A stretch of DNA of 33,031 nucleotides from Macrostomum lignano (taxonomy: Eukaryota), in contig NIVC01004860.1 of assembly GCA_002269645.1 (NCBI GenBank), positions 1 through 33,031 of the forward strand, written 5' to 3'. The position numbers were made by a program, and so were the translations under genes. This document shows positions 6,186 to 17,865 of this stretch, piece by piece (within the stretch, counting starts at the first letter, position 1; every line of letters begins with the position of its first letter). Below the pieces are notes generated by a model. It was not told where the DNA came from. It did no database searches and saw only the letters and a program-made list of their open reading frames with translations.

Positions 6186-7761
6186 TCATCCGGCTTCTTG
6201 GCCGCGTAGAAGCGACTCGATTGCTCGGCTCCACGAGTCCTGGCGCTGGGGAGAGAGGAGAAGACCGGTGCGCATGAGCTGGCTGCTCAGTACGGGCTGA
6301 GGCTGGACAGCATTCTCGAATAGGATAGCAGACGGACAGACAGGCAGACAGACACACAGACAGACAGACAGACCGACAGACAGACAGACAGACAGAAAGA
6401 GAGACAGACAGAGACAGACAGACAGACAGACAGACAGACAGACAGACAGACAGACAGACAGACAGACAGACAGACAGACAGACAGACAGACAGACAGACA
6501 GGCAGACAGACAGACAGACAGACAGACAGATAGACAGACAGACAGACAGACAGACAGACAGACAGACAGACAGACACACAGACAGACAGAGAGACAGACA
6601 GAGACAGACAGATAGAAAGACAGACAGACAGACAGACAGACAGATAGAAAGACAGACAGACCGACAGACAGACAGACAGACAGACCGACAGACAGACAGA
6701 CAGACAGACAGACAGACAGACAGACAGACAGACAGACAGACAGACAGACAGACAGACAGACAGACAGACAGACAGACAGACAGACAGACAGACAGACAGA
6801 CAGACAGACAGACAGGCAAACAGACACACAGACAGACAGACAGACAGACAGACAGACAGACCGACAGACAGACAGACCACCTACCTGTCTCAGGTAGGAA
6901 CTTAGCGGCCGGACATCCGACTCGTCAACTGAGCGAGTGGGGACGTCAACCGGGGGGCTGCGCAGCAGCGCTCGCTTCACGTTCCCTGGATGAATAGATG
7001 AAGTTTTTGGTAGGATAAAAAGTCCAGCTCTTTACTGCTGGCTGAAATTCTATTAGAGAGTGCGTGTACAAAGAAGGTGAGACTCACAGGCATAGCAGTA
7101 GTGCAGGTTGACTCCATCGGCGCACACTGAAACAGATGATCAGCTGATTTATTAAATATTCACTGCAAGGAGCCTAACTCCGATTGGTCATACTCTATCT
7201 GCTAGCTCTCAAAAAGAAAAACTTCAGAGTACAATCACTATCAATCATTGCTCGATTTTTTCAGAGCTTTCTCATTCTCAATCTTTCAGTGATCACTCAA
7301 TCAGTGTCCAATACTCAGTCTTTCAGTTCTCAGTGCTCAATCAGTGCTCAATCTTCTATCACTGCTCAGTCACTCTCAATTAGTGCTCAGTCTCCCTCCA
7401 TTAGTGCTCAGTCTCCTTCCATTAGTGCTCAGTCTCTCTCCATCAGAGCTCAGTCACGCCCCATTAGTGCTCAGTCTCCCTCCATCAGTGCTCAGTCAAG
7501 CCCCATCAGTGCTCAGTCTCTCTCCATCAGTGCTCAGTCTCCCTTCATCAGTGCTCAGTCTCCCTTCATCAGTGCTCAGTCTCCCTCCATCAGTGCTCAG
7601 TCTCCCTCCATCAGTGCTCAGTGAGCTCAGAGAAGCTCAGTCAATCAGCTTCTCCATCGCCTCTCACCCGCGTGAGGTGCGGCGGCAGCGCGACAGGAAA
7701 GTGAGTCGAGTAGCGCACAGGCAGCGATGAAGCACAGGGTCAGCTTGGCTGCAGTCGGCAT
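6186..7761 (-). CDS. Secreted neuropeptide-like precursor A, 97 aa; exons 7761-7668, 7126-7088, 6985-6885, 6245-6186: [97 protein letters not shown]
   Basis: Canonical splice sites with consistent phases (1,1,0), a hydrophobic signal-like N-terminus, a two-Cys peptide followed by KR, and exon-by-exon homology to the inverted paralog at 15392-17865. Confidence 0.82.
6329..6877. repeat. (GACA)n microsatellite in intron 3 of precursor A
   Basis: Seen directly; source of the CLSV-repeat ORFs. Confidence 0.98.
7300..7623. repeat. 21-bp minisatellite (CATCAGTGCTCAGTCTCCCTC), ~12 good units plus degenerate flank, intron 1 of precursor A
   Basis: Seen directly; reverse complement of the 15531-16347 array. 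Confidence 0.92.
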
Positions 7762-8334
7762 CTTTGCGATAGCTTGGAGTCTCTGCTGGTGTGGCCTCTC
7801 CTTGAGTCGGTAAGGCGTCTCCTCGCCAATGCCCGGCTAAATAAAAGCCAGAAAGGAGACGCATCGCCGGCCTCCGCTGCTTGGCCGGCTGCTCGGACAG
7901 AGCGAAGCTGCCGCGGCCAATTAGCGAGGAGGTGACGGCCGGCCGAGAAAGTGAGAAAGTGGCTGCTGCTCGAGCTTGCTGACCCCCGAGTTTCCGCGTT
8001 TATTTTTCTGTCTCTGTCCGAATCCCTTTTGTTTGGCATACGCTTGTTTGGACTTGCTTTTCAATGCTGAAATTTCGTAACAAGTAAATACGCTCGTGTG
8101 TACAATATCATCGAACTTTGATGACGTTTAGTATACTCGTATACATGTAAGGAGTTTCTTGCATCACCATATTTGTAGTCATTAACTTTTACGATAAAGG
8201 AAATCTCAACCAAACCAAAGTCTGCAACTAATGGAGTTCCCAGGAGGCTTCCTTTTTTTCCATTTTAGAACAGATTTCTTCAGGAAGTATCTTGATTGCC
8301 TCGGTCTTCGTCTTGGTAGCTTTATCCGGCACAT

Positions 8335-15126: not shown

Positions 15127-15540
15127 GGGATTCGGACAGAGAAAGAAAAATAAACGCGGAAACTCGGGGGTCAGCAAGCTCGAGCAGCAGCCACTTTCTC
15201 ACTTTCTCGGCTGGCCGTCACCTCCTCGCTAATTGGCCACGGCAGCTTCGCGCTGTCCGAGCAGCCGGCCAAGCAGCGGAGGCCGGCGATGCGTCTCCTT
15301 TCTGGCTTTTATTTAGCCGGGCATTGGCGAGGAGACGCCTTACCGACTCAAGGAGAGGCCACACCAGCAGAGACTCCAAGCTATCGCAAAGATGCCGACT
15401 GCAACCAAGCTGACCCTGTGCTTCATCGCTGCCTGTGCGCTACTCGACTCGCTTTCCTGCCGCGCTGCCGCCGCACCTCACGCGGGTGAGAGGCGATGGA
15501 GAAGCTGATTGACTGAGCTTCTCTGAGCTCACTGAGCACT
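15127..15540 (+). repeat. ~410-bp inverted duplicate of 7615-8026 (upstream region, signal-peptide exon and start of intron 1), about 98% identical
   Basis: By-eye alignment against the reverse complement gives about 8 mismatches. Confidence 0.93.
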
Positions 15541-17865
15541 GATGGAGGGAGACTGAGCACTGATGAAGGGAGACTGAGCACTGATGAAGGGAGACTGAGC
15601 AGTGATGAAGGGAGACTGAGCACTGATGGAGAGAGACTGAGCACTGATGGGGCTTGAATGAGCACTGATGGAGGGAGACTGAGCACTGATAGAGGGAGAC
15701 TGAGCACTGATAGAGGGAGACTGAGCACTGATGAAGGGAGACTGAGTACTGATGAAGGGAGACTGAGTACTGATGAAGGGAGACTGAGCACTGATGAAGG
15801 GAGACTGAGCACTGATGGAGAGAGACTGAGCACTAATGGAGGGAGACTAAGCACTGATGAAGGGAGACTGAGAACTGATGAAGGGAGACTAAGCACTGAT
15901 GAAGGGAGATTGAGTACTGATGAAGGGAGACTGAGTACTGATGAAGGGAGACTGAGCACTGATGAAGGGAGACTGAGCACTGATAGAGGGAGACGGAGCA
16001 CTGATAGAGGGAGACTGAGCACTGATGAAGGGAGACTGAGCACTGATAGAGGGAGACTGAGCACTGATGAAGGGAGACTGAGCACTGATGGAGGGAGACT
16101 GAGCACTGATGGAGGGAGACTGAGCACTGATGGAGGGAGACTGAGAACTGATGGAGGGAGACTGAGCACTGATGGAGGGAGACTGAGCACTGATGGAGGG
16201 AGACTGAGCACTGATGGAGGGAGACTGAGAACTGATGGAGGGAGACTGAGCACTGATGGAGGGAGACTGAGCACTGATGGAGGGAGACTGAGCACTGATG
16301 AAGGGAGACTGAGCACTGATGGAGGGAGACTGAGCACTGATAGAGGGTGAGTGAGTTTTCAATGGAGGAGTTTGATTGAGCGCTAAGCGACTCAGCCCTG
16401 GTTGGGGTTGACTGAACCCTGATTGAGAGTGACTGCAGAGTATTGATTGCGGATGATTGCGTACATAAGACTGAAGGTGAATGAAACAATGAGCACTAAT
16501 TTTGGGTGACATACAAGGCTGCTGCTGTCAGAAGCAAACTTCTTGTAAGCCAGCTGGGGCCTTAATTATGTCTGATCGTCTGACCGAGAAGACTCGAGAA
16601 TAACTTTCGAAAGTATTTTAAATTCGAGCAGACGCCCGCTGGCAAAAATGGTCGGCATGATTAGAAAGAGTCAGAGTTCTGCAATGCATTTCTGAGTGCT
16701 CAATCGTGTACGCTCGTACTCGAACTGATTGACAAACAGAGAGATGCATTGAGATCAGCTAAACTGAAGGTTTCAGAAAACTTTCTTGCAGGATTTGTAA
16801 GCGAACCTGCGATTCCCAAGCTCTCTCAATCCACAAGATTCCTTTTTGACCAAGCAATTCGTCTTGGAAATTAAAAGCCATGCAATTTCAAGAAATCGGT
16901 GGTATGATATTCGCGTACCTTTATTTCAGTGTGCACAGACGGTGTCAACCTGCATTACTGCTACTCATGTGAGTTCTGAATGATCTGAACCTGCCAGCTG
17001 TACTGCGGCTCAGGGATTACAAACCCATTTTGTGTACCAAATTTAGGCTATAATCCGATCTACATGTATTTTCTAGGGAATGTGAAGCGGGCTCTGGAAC
17101 TCCTACAAAGTCGACCAATTGAAGCTGCCCCGCTCCGTGGTAGCAGCGGCCGCAGCCTGCAGGTGCAGCCAGGCAATGAGGCAGTCATTCGCTCTCTGAA
17201 GTCCTATCTTAGACAGGTGGATAGAATGGTTCGTAGCGGTTGTATACTATCTATCTATCTAATCTATCTATTTATCTATCTATCTATCTATCTATCTATC
17301 TATCTATCTATCTATCTATCTATCTATCTATCTATCTATCTATCTATCTATCTATCTATCTATCTATCTATCTAATCTATCTATTTATCTATCTATCTAT
17401 CTATCTATCTATCTATCTATCTATCTATCTATCTATCTATCTATCTATCTATCTATCTATCTATCTATCTATCTATCTATCTATCTATCTATCTATCTAT
17501 CTATCTATCTATCTATCTATCTATCTATCTATCTATCTATCTATCTATCTATCTATCTATCTATCTATCTATCTATCTATCTATCTATCTATCTATCTAT
17601 CTATCTATCTATCTATCTATCTATCTATCTATCTATCTATCTATCTATCTATCTATCTATCTATCTATCTATCCTTTCTATCTATCTATCTATCTCCATC
17701 GTCTATCTATATCCGTCTATCTACACGAATCTACATGTAAAAGCCATTTCAAAAACACAATCATCTCGACAGAGTCGGCAGGATCCCGACTTGGACCCCA
17801 TCGAGATCCTGATGCATAGACAGCAAGATCCGCAGTGGATCCGTGACTGGCGCGACGGCAGATAA
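15392..17865 (+). CDS. Secreted neuropeptide-like precursor B, 121 aa; exons 15392-15485, 16930-16968, 17077-17216, 17773-17865: [121 protein letters not shown]
   Basis: Splice sites GCG G|gtgaga, tttcag|TG...T|gtgagt, ttctag|GG, CAG|gtggat, gacag|AGT. Structure is identical to gene A, and micro-exon differences are mostly synonymous. Confidence 0.84.
15531..16347. repeat. 21-bp minisatellite (CTGAGCACTGATGGAGGGAGA), ~39 units, intron 1 of precursor B
   Basis: Seen directly. Confidence 0.96.
17246..17720. repeat. (TATC)n microsatellite in intron 3 of precursor B
   Basis: Seen directly. Confidence 0.98.

Follow-up and report, generated by a model that had tools for sequence, protein, structure and literature searches.

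Two genes of the flatworm Macrostomum lignano, designated A and B here and lying in a 33,031-nt stretch of genomic DNA (contig NIVC01004860.1; the whole stretch is referred to as the window), are real and expressed, and encode precursors of a small peptide that is predicted to be secreted and to carry a disulfide loop. At least four paralogs of this kind occur in the species, and we consider it probable (roughly 0.65) that these are highly divergent, non-amidated prohormones of the EP (GGNG)/CCHamide type by descent. Most tellingly, such an EP-type relationship is suggested chiefly by shared gene architecture.

The two genes are arranged head-to-head in divergent orientation, with four exons each. 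In gene A (reverse strand), exon 1 (7668..7761) contains the start codon, the signal peptide and AAAAPHA, and ends in phase 1 (…CAC GCG G|gtgaga). It is followed by a micro-exon of 39 nt (7088..7126; phase 1 at both ends, flanked by tttcag and gtgagt) that spans V, 12 residues and W. Exon 3 (6885..6985) begins with GG AAC GTG AAG CGA, that is (W)NVKR, and continues into a spacer ending with …YLRQ in phase 0, and exon 4 (6186..6245) adds 19 residues and the stop codon. Gene B (forward strand) is built in the same way: exon 1 (15392..15485) encodes the signal peptide and is 97% identical to that of gene A, the 39-nt micro-exon (16930..16968) again has phase 1 at both ends and spans V, 12 residues and W, and exon 3 (17077..17216) carries (W)NVKR and a spacer ending with …SYLRQ in phase 0. 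Two versions of exon 4 of gene B were found. The first (17773..17865) was that of the original prediction and also that of UniProt A0A1I8HT83, whereas the RNA-seq-based GenBank model places the acceptor 2 nt downstream, at 17775, and the stop at 17819, giving a shorter and different C-terminus (…RQSAGSRLGPHRDPDA).

Both genes had been predicted from the DNA alone, and their coordinates were confirmed, all exons being bordered by AG and GT and the reading frames closing. The RNA-seq-derived GenBank models BOX15_Mlig031250g1 and Mlig002632g1 show the same splicing and keep the 39-nt micro-exon. GenBank protein P0001 matches gene A at 99%, including exon 1, and P0002 matches gene B; the annotation of these proteins came from a genome-guided RNA-seq assembly (method in PMC5730564), and both products are labelled "hypothetical protein". 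Thus, the genes, which were described as hidden, are indeed absent from the list of open reading frames but are annotated in GenBank, so that they were hidden from the former only. The products were also as described, namely a signal-like N-terminus followed by the Cys loop, KR and a spacer. Precursors are approximately 100-125 aa long; those of A and B start with MPTA(A/T), and (A/T)DGVNLHYCY(A/S)WNVKR appears later, ahead of the spacer.

Repeats were observed around the 5' part of both genes. A 669-nt inverted repeat (95%) includes the 5' ends of the two genes. Its left arm (7358..8026) takes in exon 1 of gene A together with approximately 265 bp ahead of the ATG and the first part of intron 1, and its right arm (15127..15795) holds the promoter region of gene B, its exon 1 and the first part of its intron 1. 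Between A and B, this 5' block has undergone homogenisation. In addition, a 21-bp minisatellite lies in intron 1 of both genes, with approximately 14 copies in A (7336..7622) and approximately 39 in B (15531..16355). The resemblance between A and B is more than chance: their micro-exons are 79% identical, whereas the introns flanking them are approximately 50% identical, that is, unalignable, and two further paralogs keep both the peptide and the 39-nt exon.

These two paralogs, C (P0005) and D (P0012; UniProt names paralog C a "Secreted protein"), lie elsewhere in the M. lignano genome and are deeply diverged. A and B, which had been regarded as two isoforms, are therefore paralogous genes within a family of four or more. 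All four members share a signal peptide, the motif C-x-D-x-[VI]-N-L-[HN]-Y-C-Y-[AS]-W-N-V-KR-AL and four exons, and the exon plan is the same throughout, with the 39-nt phase-1/phase-1 micro-exon, an exon 3 beginning with GGAA(C/T)GT and a last intron in phase 0. C and D match A and B in HAVCxDxxNLHYCYxWNVKRAL only, their signal peptides and spacers being otherwise unalignable. In all four precursors the N-terminus has a hydrophobic core, Cys1 is residue 32-33 and KR occupies residues 47-48; A and B contain no dibasic site other than this KR. All four also keep the Asn at Cys2+4 and a Tyr in the ring. The ring His (position 7) occurs in A-C and is replaced by Asn in D, whose L-N-Y-C shows that L-H-x-C is not the fixed feature it was first taken to be. 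The cysteine-loop micro-exon is under strong purifying selection, as originally proposed. Six of its codons differ between A and B, four of them synonymously, and Nei-Gojobori analysis of a 22-codon core gave pS values of 0.50-0.93, pN values of 0.04-0.15 and dN/dS ratios of 0.04-0.17.

In the processing scheme that we propose, the N-terminal signal peptide would take the precursor into the secretory pathway, signal peptidase would expose a peptide beginning a few residues ahead of Cys1, and the two cysteines would close a C-X8-C ring. A prohormone convertase would cut after the conserved KR, and a carboxypeptidase would trim K and R; the nervous system of M. lignano expresses a homolog of prohormone convertase 2 (PMC4490696). 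The predicted product would be a slightly acidic (net charge -1 to -2), disulfide-cyclised peptide of 18-22 residues, ending with …C-Y-[A/S]-W-N-V and a free carboxyl end. Most likely it would signal as a secreted neuropeptide or hormone through a G-protein-coupled receptor, with expression presumably in neuronal or endocrine cells.

To relate the family to known prohormones, gene structures were compared with EP genes from two phyla, represented by an oyster and Lingula, with elevenin as the one control family. In the EP gene of Saccostrea echinata, the signal-peptide exon ends in phase 1 and is followed by a 45-nt micro-exon, [A]AKC-X8-CFG[G], and by exon 3, (G)NGKR…EYLKEQ, with its end in phase 0. 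The EP gene of Lingula anatina has a 42-nt micro-exon, [D/N]KC-X8-CFG[G], an exon 3 beginning with GG AAC GGC AAA CGG, and a last intron in phase 0 after …LRRL. The Macrostomum genes resemble both in having four coding exons, a loop micro-exon (39 nt compared with 42 and 45 nt) bounded by phase-1 introns, and a phase-0 last intron. Intron 2 interrupts codon Cys2+3 between its first and second bases in the Macrostomum, Saccostrea and Lingula genes alike. Since exon 3 of gene A begins with GG AAC GTG AAG CGA, two G-to-T changes separate W-N-V-KR from G-N-G-KR. It should be noted that the use of the loop micro-exon architecture as a feature of EP membership was set here from the oyster and Lingula genes and is not a published criterion, and that phase-1 introns after signal peptides are common generally. 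Gene structure lends the EP/GGNG/CCHamide link independent support.

Peptide sequences gave a more mixed picture. As in EPs, a single peptide copy lies straight after the signal peptide and is followed by a dibasic site and a non-conserved spacer. The C-X8-C ring of A-D (putatively disulfide-closed) is that of annelid, mollusc, nemertean and brachiopod EPs, the ring having 8 residues in trochozoan EPs and 6 in ecdysozoan, rotifer and entoproct forms. EPs have an aromatic residue and often a His in the ring and, in spiralians, a C-terminal Asn. The Macrostomum peptides have a ring aromatic residue in four of four paralogs, a ring His in three of four and the Asn four residues past Cys2 and two before KR, an equivocal resemblance in view of the overall PSSM score. 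In contrast, the amidating Gly is absent, as had been noted for A and B, and is replaced by Val in all four paralogs (…W-N-V-KR); Y-[A/S]-W takes the place of GG or GA after Cys2; and the ring lacks Trp at position 4 and Gly at position 2. The features missing here, namely the amidating Gly, GG/GA after Cys2 and the usual ring Trp and Gly, are EP/CCHamide hallmarks in the survey of Thiel et al. (2019; PMC6617912). The number of paralogs is also unusual, four compared with the one or two typical of EP/CCHamide. Non-amidated members of this group do exist, including CCHamide-2b of Leptinotarsa, in which this condition arose after gene duplication (Veenstra, 2019; PMC6585902), purified earthworm GGNG peptides and a tardigrade EP. 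However, the Leptinotarsa and earthworm peptides, which likewise lack a C-terminal amide, are still EP/CCHamide-like in sequence, whereas the Macrostomum peptides are not.

In PSSM and hhalign analysis, residue-level matches to EP/CCHamide and elevenin were not significant, whereas gene structure did discriminate. With the EP PSSM the score was -23 bits, only His and Asn contributed positively, and permutation p values of 0.03-0.06 were taken as not significant. No profile similarity to EP was found in the spacer and C-terminal regions. The hhalign probability of the Macrostomum family against EP was 20%, whereas that of EP against elevenin was 70%. Because these two separately named families score higher with each other, layout-level similarity should be given little weight, and the joint EP/CCHamide-elevenin group to which the genes were originally assigned, a grouping based on layout, is not upheld. 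The EP/GGNG/CCHamide part of that assignment is retained on gene structure, and the elevenin part is not, given its PSSM result and the intron within the elevenin ring.

The most serious alternative, which we regard as possible but unlikely, is an orphan family of independent origin, restricted to Macrostomum or to flatworms, whose EP-like layout and exon pattern arose by convergence or chance. A version of the same idea, given equally little credence, is that the four genes represent a new signalling family of cyclic peptides, specific to flatworms and with a receptor of its own, which would not share descent with EP/CCHamide and would have acquired its micro-exon architecture by convergence. 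No homologs outside M. lignano were found by an exhaustive HMMER search of 1.84 billion representative proteins or by two word-indexed searches of 5.8 billion proteins, and the failure of these protein searches to return other flatworms leaves the sequence gap to EP without a bridge. No Pfam family was found for these precursors, and together with the non-significant PSSM and hhalign scores and the missing EP hallmarks this is consistent with an orphan family. Against it stands the position of intron 2, which relative to Cys2 and KR falls in the exact codon and phase of the oyster and Lingula EP genes, a coincidence with a probability by itself of approximately 1-3% as a rough estimate. An orphan family would also have to share the symmetric phase-1 loop micro-exon (39, 42 or 45 nt), the phase-0 last intron and the GGAAYG start of exon 3, and the elevenin control indicates that a loop micro-exon is not generic to Cys-loop peptides. 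We therefore prefer divergent EP/CCHamide-type prohormones.

A secreted product outside the neuroendocrine system (for example, a gland or seminal-fluid protein, pheromone, toxin or antimicrobial peptide) with incidental prohormone-like processing seems improbable. The family does appear to be lineage-restricted and multi-copy with fast-evolving spacers, and lineage-specific transcripts of gland and prostate are numerous in M. lignano. However, the acidic net charge is not antimicrobial-like, a known neuropeptide gene has the same architecture, and approximately 20 residues stay near-invariant at saturated synonymous sites, a pattern more in keeping with a receptor ligand than with fast-evolving proteins of reproduction or defence.

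It is very doubtful that the genes encode a divergent precursor of the elevenin type (L11; SNET-1 in nematodes). Spiralian elevenins have the same C-X8-C ring directly after the signal peptide, a tail of 5-6 residues, KR and no amidation, and some phoronid elevenins end with …W-T-V-KR. However, elevenin PSSM scores of -34 to -37 bits (permutation p 0.57-0.80) were no better than those of permuted sequence, the hhalign probability was 1.4%, and the elevenin consensus C-[RT]-K-[YF]-x-[FY]-[AH]-P-x-C-R-G is missing, only the cysteines and KR being common. An intron within the peptide is characteristic of elevenin (Veenstra, 2019; PMC6585902). In the elevenin gene of Lingula, the signal peptide and Cys1 share one exon, a phase-2 intron interrupts the ring after Cys1+1, and there is no micro-exon, whereas in Macrostomum a single micro-exon carries the whole ring. 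Melanin-concentrating hormone (…C-MLGRVYRP-C-W-Q-V) has an 8-residue ring and a free C-terminal W-(Q/N)-V as well, but by inspection we take this resemblance as chance, given that the hormone occupies the C-terminus of its precursor rather than a place directly after the signal peptide, that W-x-V is offset by two residues and that the hormone is not known outside deuterostomes.

No paper describing these genes or this peptide was found in the searchable literature, in agreement with the original suggestion of a possibly undescribed peptide. The survey of Thiel et al. (2019; PMC6617912) recorded EP/CCHamide in nemerteans, brachiopods, entoprocts, rotifers and several ecdysozoan phyla and did not list flatworms, and we found no published flatworm member. 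Flatworm neuropeptide sets have few firm links to their counterparts in other spiralians, since rapid evolution of the peptides defeats sequence searches. If the EP assignment is true, the flatworm gap in the distribution of EP/CCHamide would be filled by a ligand of EP type in which amidation was lost and the gene multiplied into four paralogs. In that case, a loop micro-exon together with intron phases could reveal orthologs once sequence similarity is gone, an approach that would be reusable for other fast-evolving peptide families. Elsewhere, EP/CCHamide peptides have roles in feeding, gut motility and ciliary locomotion, and since M. lignano is amenable to transgenesis and RNAi, the function of this family is directly testable.

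The exon models put forward for genes A and B in the original prediction were reproduced exactly when both stretches were read and spliced in silico. Gene A lies on the minus strand (exons 7761-7668, 7126-7088, 6985-6885 and 6245-6186; introns of 541, 102 and 639 nt) and gene B on the plus strand (exons 15392-15485, 16930-16968, 17077-17216 and 17773-17865; introns of 1444, 108 and 556 nt), with AG/GT at every exon border and intron phases 1, 1 and 0 in both. Their products (97 and 121 aa, respectively) follow the pattern MPTA(A/T)...(A/T)DGVNLHYCY(A/S)WNVKRAL and then continue into a poorly conserved spacer. 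A protein search identified the GenBank entries BOX15_Mlig031250g1 as gene A (99% identity) and BOX15_Mlig002632g1 as gene B, both with the micro-exon included. Exon 4 of gene B has two candidate acceptors, 17773 and 17775, which are 2 nt apart (cag^AG^TCGG; here and below a caret marks a splice or cleavage position) and open different frames, so that the two C-termini are unrelated (...SRQDPDLDPIEILMHRQQDPQWIRDWRDGR or ...SAGSRLGPHRDPDA); in the model based on RNA-seq the acceptor is at 17775 and the C-terminus is the second, shorter one. Since the M. lignano annotation was built from RNA-seq only (StringTie/TACO and a de novo transcriptome, with TransDecoder ORFs; PMC5730564), spliced transcripts containing the micro-exon exist, as the original prediction had supposed. 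In two UniProt models, P0003 and P0004, the micro-exon is skipped without a change of frame, which may reflect either genuine alternative splicing or an artefact of gene prediction. A motif scan for further loop micro-exons, run over all six frames of the window, returned only the two known ones and thus gave no indication of mutually exclusive loop exons.

Two additional paralogs were identified elsewhere in the genome. A third type, C (P0005; Mlig018733g1 and Mlig023371g1/g2), which carries the UniProt name 'Secreted protein', emerged when 1.84 billion representative proteins were searched exhaustively with HMMER, and a fourth, D (P0012; Mlig023273g1), when a profile of A-C was used. No homolog outside M. 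lignano could be found by word-indexed search with precursor A, by HMMER against the 1.84 billion representatives or with the A-C profile, and none of the four precursors belonged to a Pfam family. The C and D loci (L002, L003 and L004) have the same four exons as A and B, including a 39-nt phase-1/phase-1 micro-exon between tttcag and gt(g/a)agt, an exon 3 that opens with GGAA(C/T)GT and a phase-0 last intron. Signal peptides and spacers were unalignable across A-D; the core was almost invariant, (H/Q)A(V/D)-C-x-D-x-(V/I)-N-L-(H/N)-Y-C-Y-(A/S)-W-N-V-K-R-A-L.

Purifying selection on the loop, proposed earlier from synonymous codon differences between A and B, proved to be stronger than first stated. 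Over the 22-codon core, pS was 0.50-0.93 versus a pN of 0.04-0.15 (Nei-Gojobori), with dN/dS of 0.04-0.17 where computable, and the micro-exons of A and B were 79% identical as compared with about 50% for the introns flanking them; identity over the whole of exon 3 was 49%. The 5' ends of the two genes were nearly identical (97% in exon 1 and 100% in the first 46 nt of intron 1) and lie within an inverted repeat of 669 nt and 95% identity (7358-8026 and 15127-15795) that includes about 265 bp of upstream sequence. The end of this near-identical block, 46 nt past exon 1, coincides with the start of a 21-bp minisatellite present in intron 1 of both genes (7336-7622, about 14 copies, in A; 15531-16355, about 39 copies, in B). 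Because the near-identical 5' end contrasts with the synonymous sites of the micro-exon, which are near saturation, our data suggest that homogenisation, most likely through gene conversion, has kept the 5' block alike in the two inverted copies.

The window is eukaryotic and repeat-rich. Intron 3 of both genes is filled by a long tetranucleotide microsatellite of different motif: 138 copies of (CAGA)n in A (6329-6877) and 111 copies of (CTAT)n in B (17247-17695). Long minisatellites are found at 1-1340, 4964-5408, 8324-9565 and 27128-28214 (22-bp x 61, 32-bp x 14, 34-bp x 36 and complex 19/24/79-bp, respectively), and the window turns AT-rich (GC of 27-39%) between about 25 and 31 kb. Genes A and B are separated by two tandem paralogs encoding protein kinases (10063-11385 and 12595-14399, minus strand; GenBank products of 366 and 460 aa), each split by an intron and with Pfam Pkinase matches of 6e-39 and 3e-38 on the N-lobes. 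Two tandem ORFs of 139 aa for cyclophilin-type peptidyl-prolyl isomerases (20004-20423 and 24389-24808, minus strand; Pfam Pro_isomerase, 4e-38) differ by one residue, indicating a recent local duplication that fits the redundancy of the assembly.

Processing of the four precursors was predicted from their sequences. All of them show a hydrophobic core near the N-terminus (Kyte-Doolittle mean of 2.9-3.1 over 10 residues) and small-residue (-3, -1) candidate cleavage sites just upstream of the loop (for example, ...AGQACA^QADC... in D); on these heuristics, and on the automatic UniProt name of C, A-D are predicted to carry signal peptides. The first Cys is located at residue 32-33 and the KR at 47-48 in every paralog, and A and B contain no dibasic site other than this KR. 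M. lignano expresses an essential homolog of prohormone convertase 2 in its nervous system (PMC4490696). The expected product would be a peptide of 18-22 residues, closed into a ring by a single disulfide and carrying a net charge of -1 to -2, and its C-terminus, ...WNV, would be free because no Gly precedes the KR. The spacer of D (L003, about 4448-4615) contains a run of eight Gly and extra dibasic sites (KR 55, RR 84 and RR 112), including a possible amidation-type site, ...GAGKGRR; these features were not conserved in A-C.

The original prediction had assigned the peptides to a group comprising the excitatory peptide (EP)/CCHamide family and elevenin. The C-X8-C ring and the basic site are common to the Macrostomum, EP/CCHamide and elevenin sets, and we compared the cores with published EP/CCHamide precursors (Thiel et al. 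2019) and spiralian elevenins (Thiel et al. 2021), using PSSMs with the cysteines as fixed anchor positions and a permutation null. On the trochozoan EP matrix, Macrostomum cores reached -23 to -25 bits (p 0.03-0.06), with contributions solely from the His in the ring and the Asn at the fourth residue after the second Cys (Cys2+4); on the elevenin matrix they reached -34 to -37 bits (p 0.57-0.80). The hhalign probabilities were 20% against EP and 1.4% against elevenin. Since EP and elevenin themselves, whose receptor types are separately named, reached 70% in a control comparison, similarity at the level of layout is non-discriminating. No similarity to EP was observed in the spacers by hhalign. 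Thus, the residue-level tests (PSSM with permutation; hhalign on full precursors and spacers) were significant for neither family, and a likeness of the Y-L-[KR]-x-Q type at the end of exon 3 stays anecdotal. Sequence alone does not support a claim of membership in either family.

Gene structure distinguishes the two candidates, in favour of EP/CCHamide and to the disadvantage of elevenin, because the Macrostomum genes match the EP exon plan while elevenin has an intron inside its ring. We mapped the exons of the annotated EP genes of Saccostrea echinata and Lingula anatina (isoform X1) and of the Lingula elevenin gene. In S. echinata, the signal peptide is encoded by exon 1, which stops at ...GTA ACA G^gt in phase 1, the micro-exon, of 45 nt, is exon 2 (CA GCA AAA TGC ... 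TGC TTC GGA G, giving [A]AK-C-KGPWANHM-C-FG[G]), exon 3 opens with GA AAT GGA AAG AGA, that is (G)NGKR, and closes with ...EYLKEQ in phase 0, and exon 4 encodes the C-terminus; the borders of exon 3 were confirmed by Crassostrea gigas genomic ORFs. In L. anatina, exon 1 ends ...GAT GCC A^gt (phase 1), the micro-exon has 42 nt ([D/N]K-C-KGPWRVHG-C-FG[G]), exon 3 opens with GG AAC GGC AAA CGG, and the last intron, in phase 0, follows ...TLRRL. This gene also has an optional phase-1/phase-1 cassette (ITLDQLIARGILPPEL, about 5951-5998 of locus L007), placed after the exon for the signal peptide and before the loop micro-exon, and its isoform X4 has an alternative first exon (MPEIHIDRNIALRKY...) in place of the one that encodes the signal peptide in isoform X1. 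The corresponding sequence in the Macrostomum genes is ...G^gt - ag^TG TGC ... TAT GCC T^gt - ag^GG AAC GTG AAG CGA. Thus, in the mollusc, the brachiopod and all four Macrostomum paralogs, the ring stands alone on a symmetric phase-1 micro-exon (45, 42 and 39 nt, respectively), the second intron cuts the codon of Cys2+3 after its first base, codons for Asn-x-Lys-Arg open exon 3 and the last intron is in phase 0. Two G-to-T changes separate the Macrostomum W-N-V-KR from the canonical EP G-N-G-KR (T^GG for G^GG and GTG for GGC). In contrast, the Lingula elevenin gene has its signal peptide and first Cys on one exon, and its ring is interrupted by a phase-2 intron (TGC AG^gt); an intron within the peptide sequence is described as characteristic of elevenin (Veenstra 2019, PMC6585902).

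These structural features do not weigh equally. A phase-1 intron after the signal peptide is common in general and therefore weighs little, and the phase-0 last intron is not confidently alignable. The specific evidence is the exact position and phase of the second intron together with the micro-exon, for which we roughly estimate a chance coincidence of about 1-3%; a factor of two is allowed on top of this for the two families tested. We therefore consider divergent EP/CCHamide descent the most probable reading, at roughly 65%. Points against it are the absence of the amide and of the GG, a profile score below zero, the replacement of His by Asn in D and a comparison limited to few EP genes and control families; non-amidated members of the EP/CCHamide family do exist (Thiel et al. 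2019, PMC6617912; Veenstra 2019, PMC6585902). That the precursors instead constitute an independent orphan peptide family seems unlikely. Elevenin is very improbable, given the in-ring intron, the PSSM p values and the hhalign probability of 1.4%, and the elevenin part of the original grouping was accordingly dropped. Readings as melanin-concentrating hormone (MCH) or as antimicrobial peptides were rejected because of position in the precursor and charge, respectively.

The peptides had also been proposed as possibly undescribed. No mention of the gene IDs or the peptide motif was found in open-access full text; the genes themselves are publicly annotated in GenBank, as hypothetical proteins only. 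Neither a neuropeptide catalogue nor a single-cell source that includes them could be found for M. lignano in the open-access literature, which also yielded nothing relevant on flatworm EP/CCHamide ligands or receptors. The main text of Collins 2010 mentions no Cys-loop planarian peptide, and the 2019 EP/CCHamide survey listed no flatworm (Thiel et al. 2019, PMC6617912). What is new here is a non-amidated, four-paralog and sequence-divergent flatworm family, probably of EP/CCHamide type, which has a bearing on neuropeptide evolution and is directly testable in the tractable model M. lignano.
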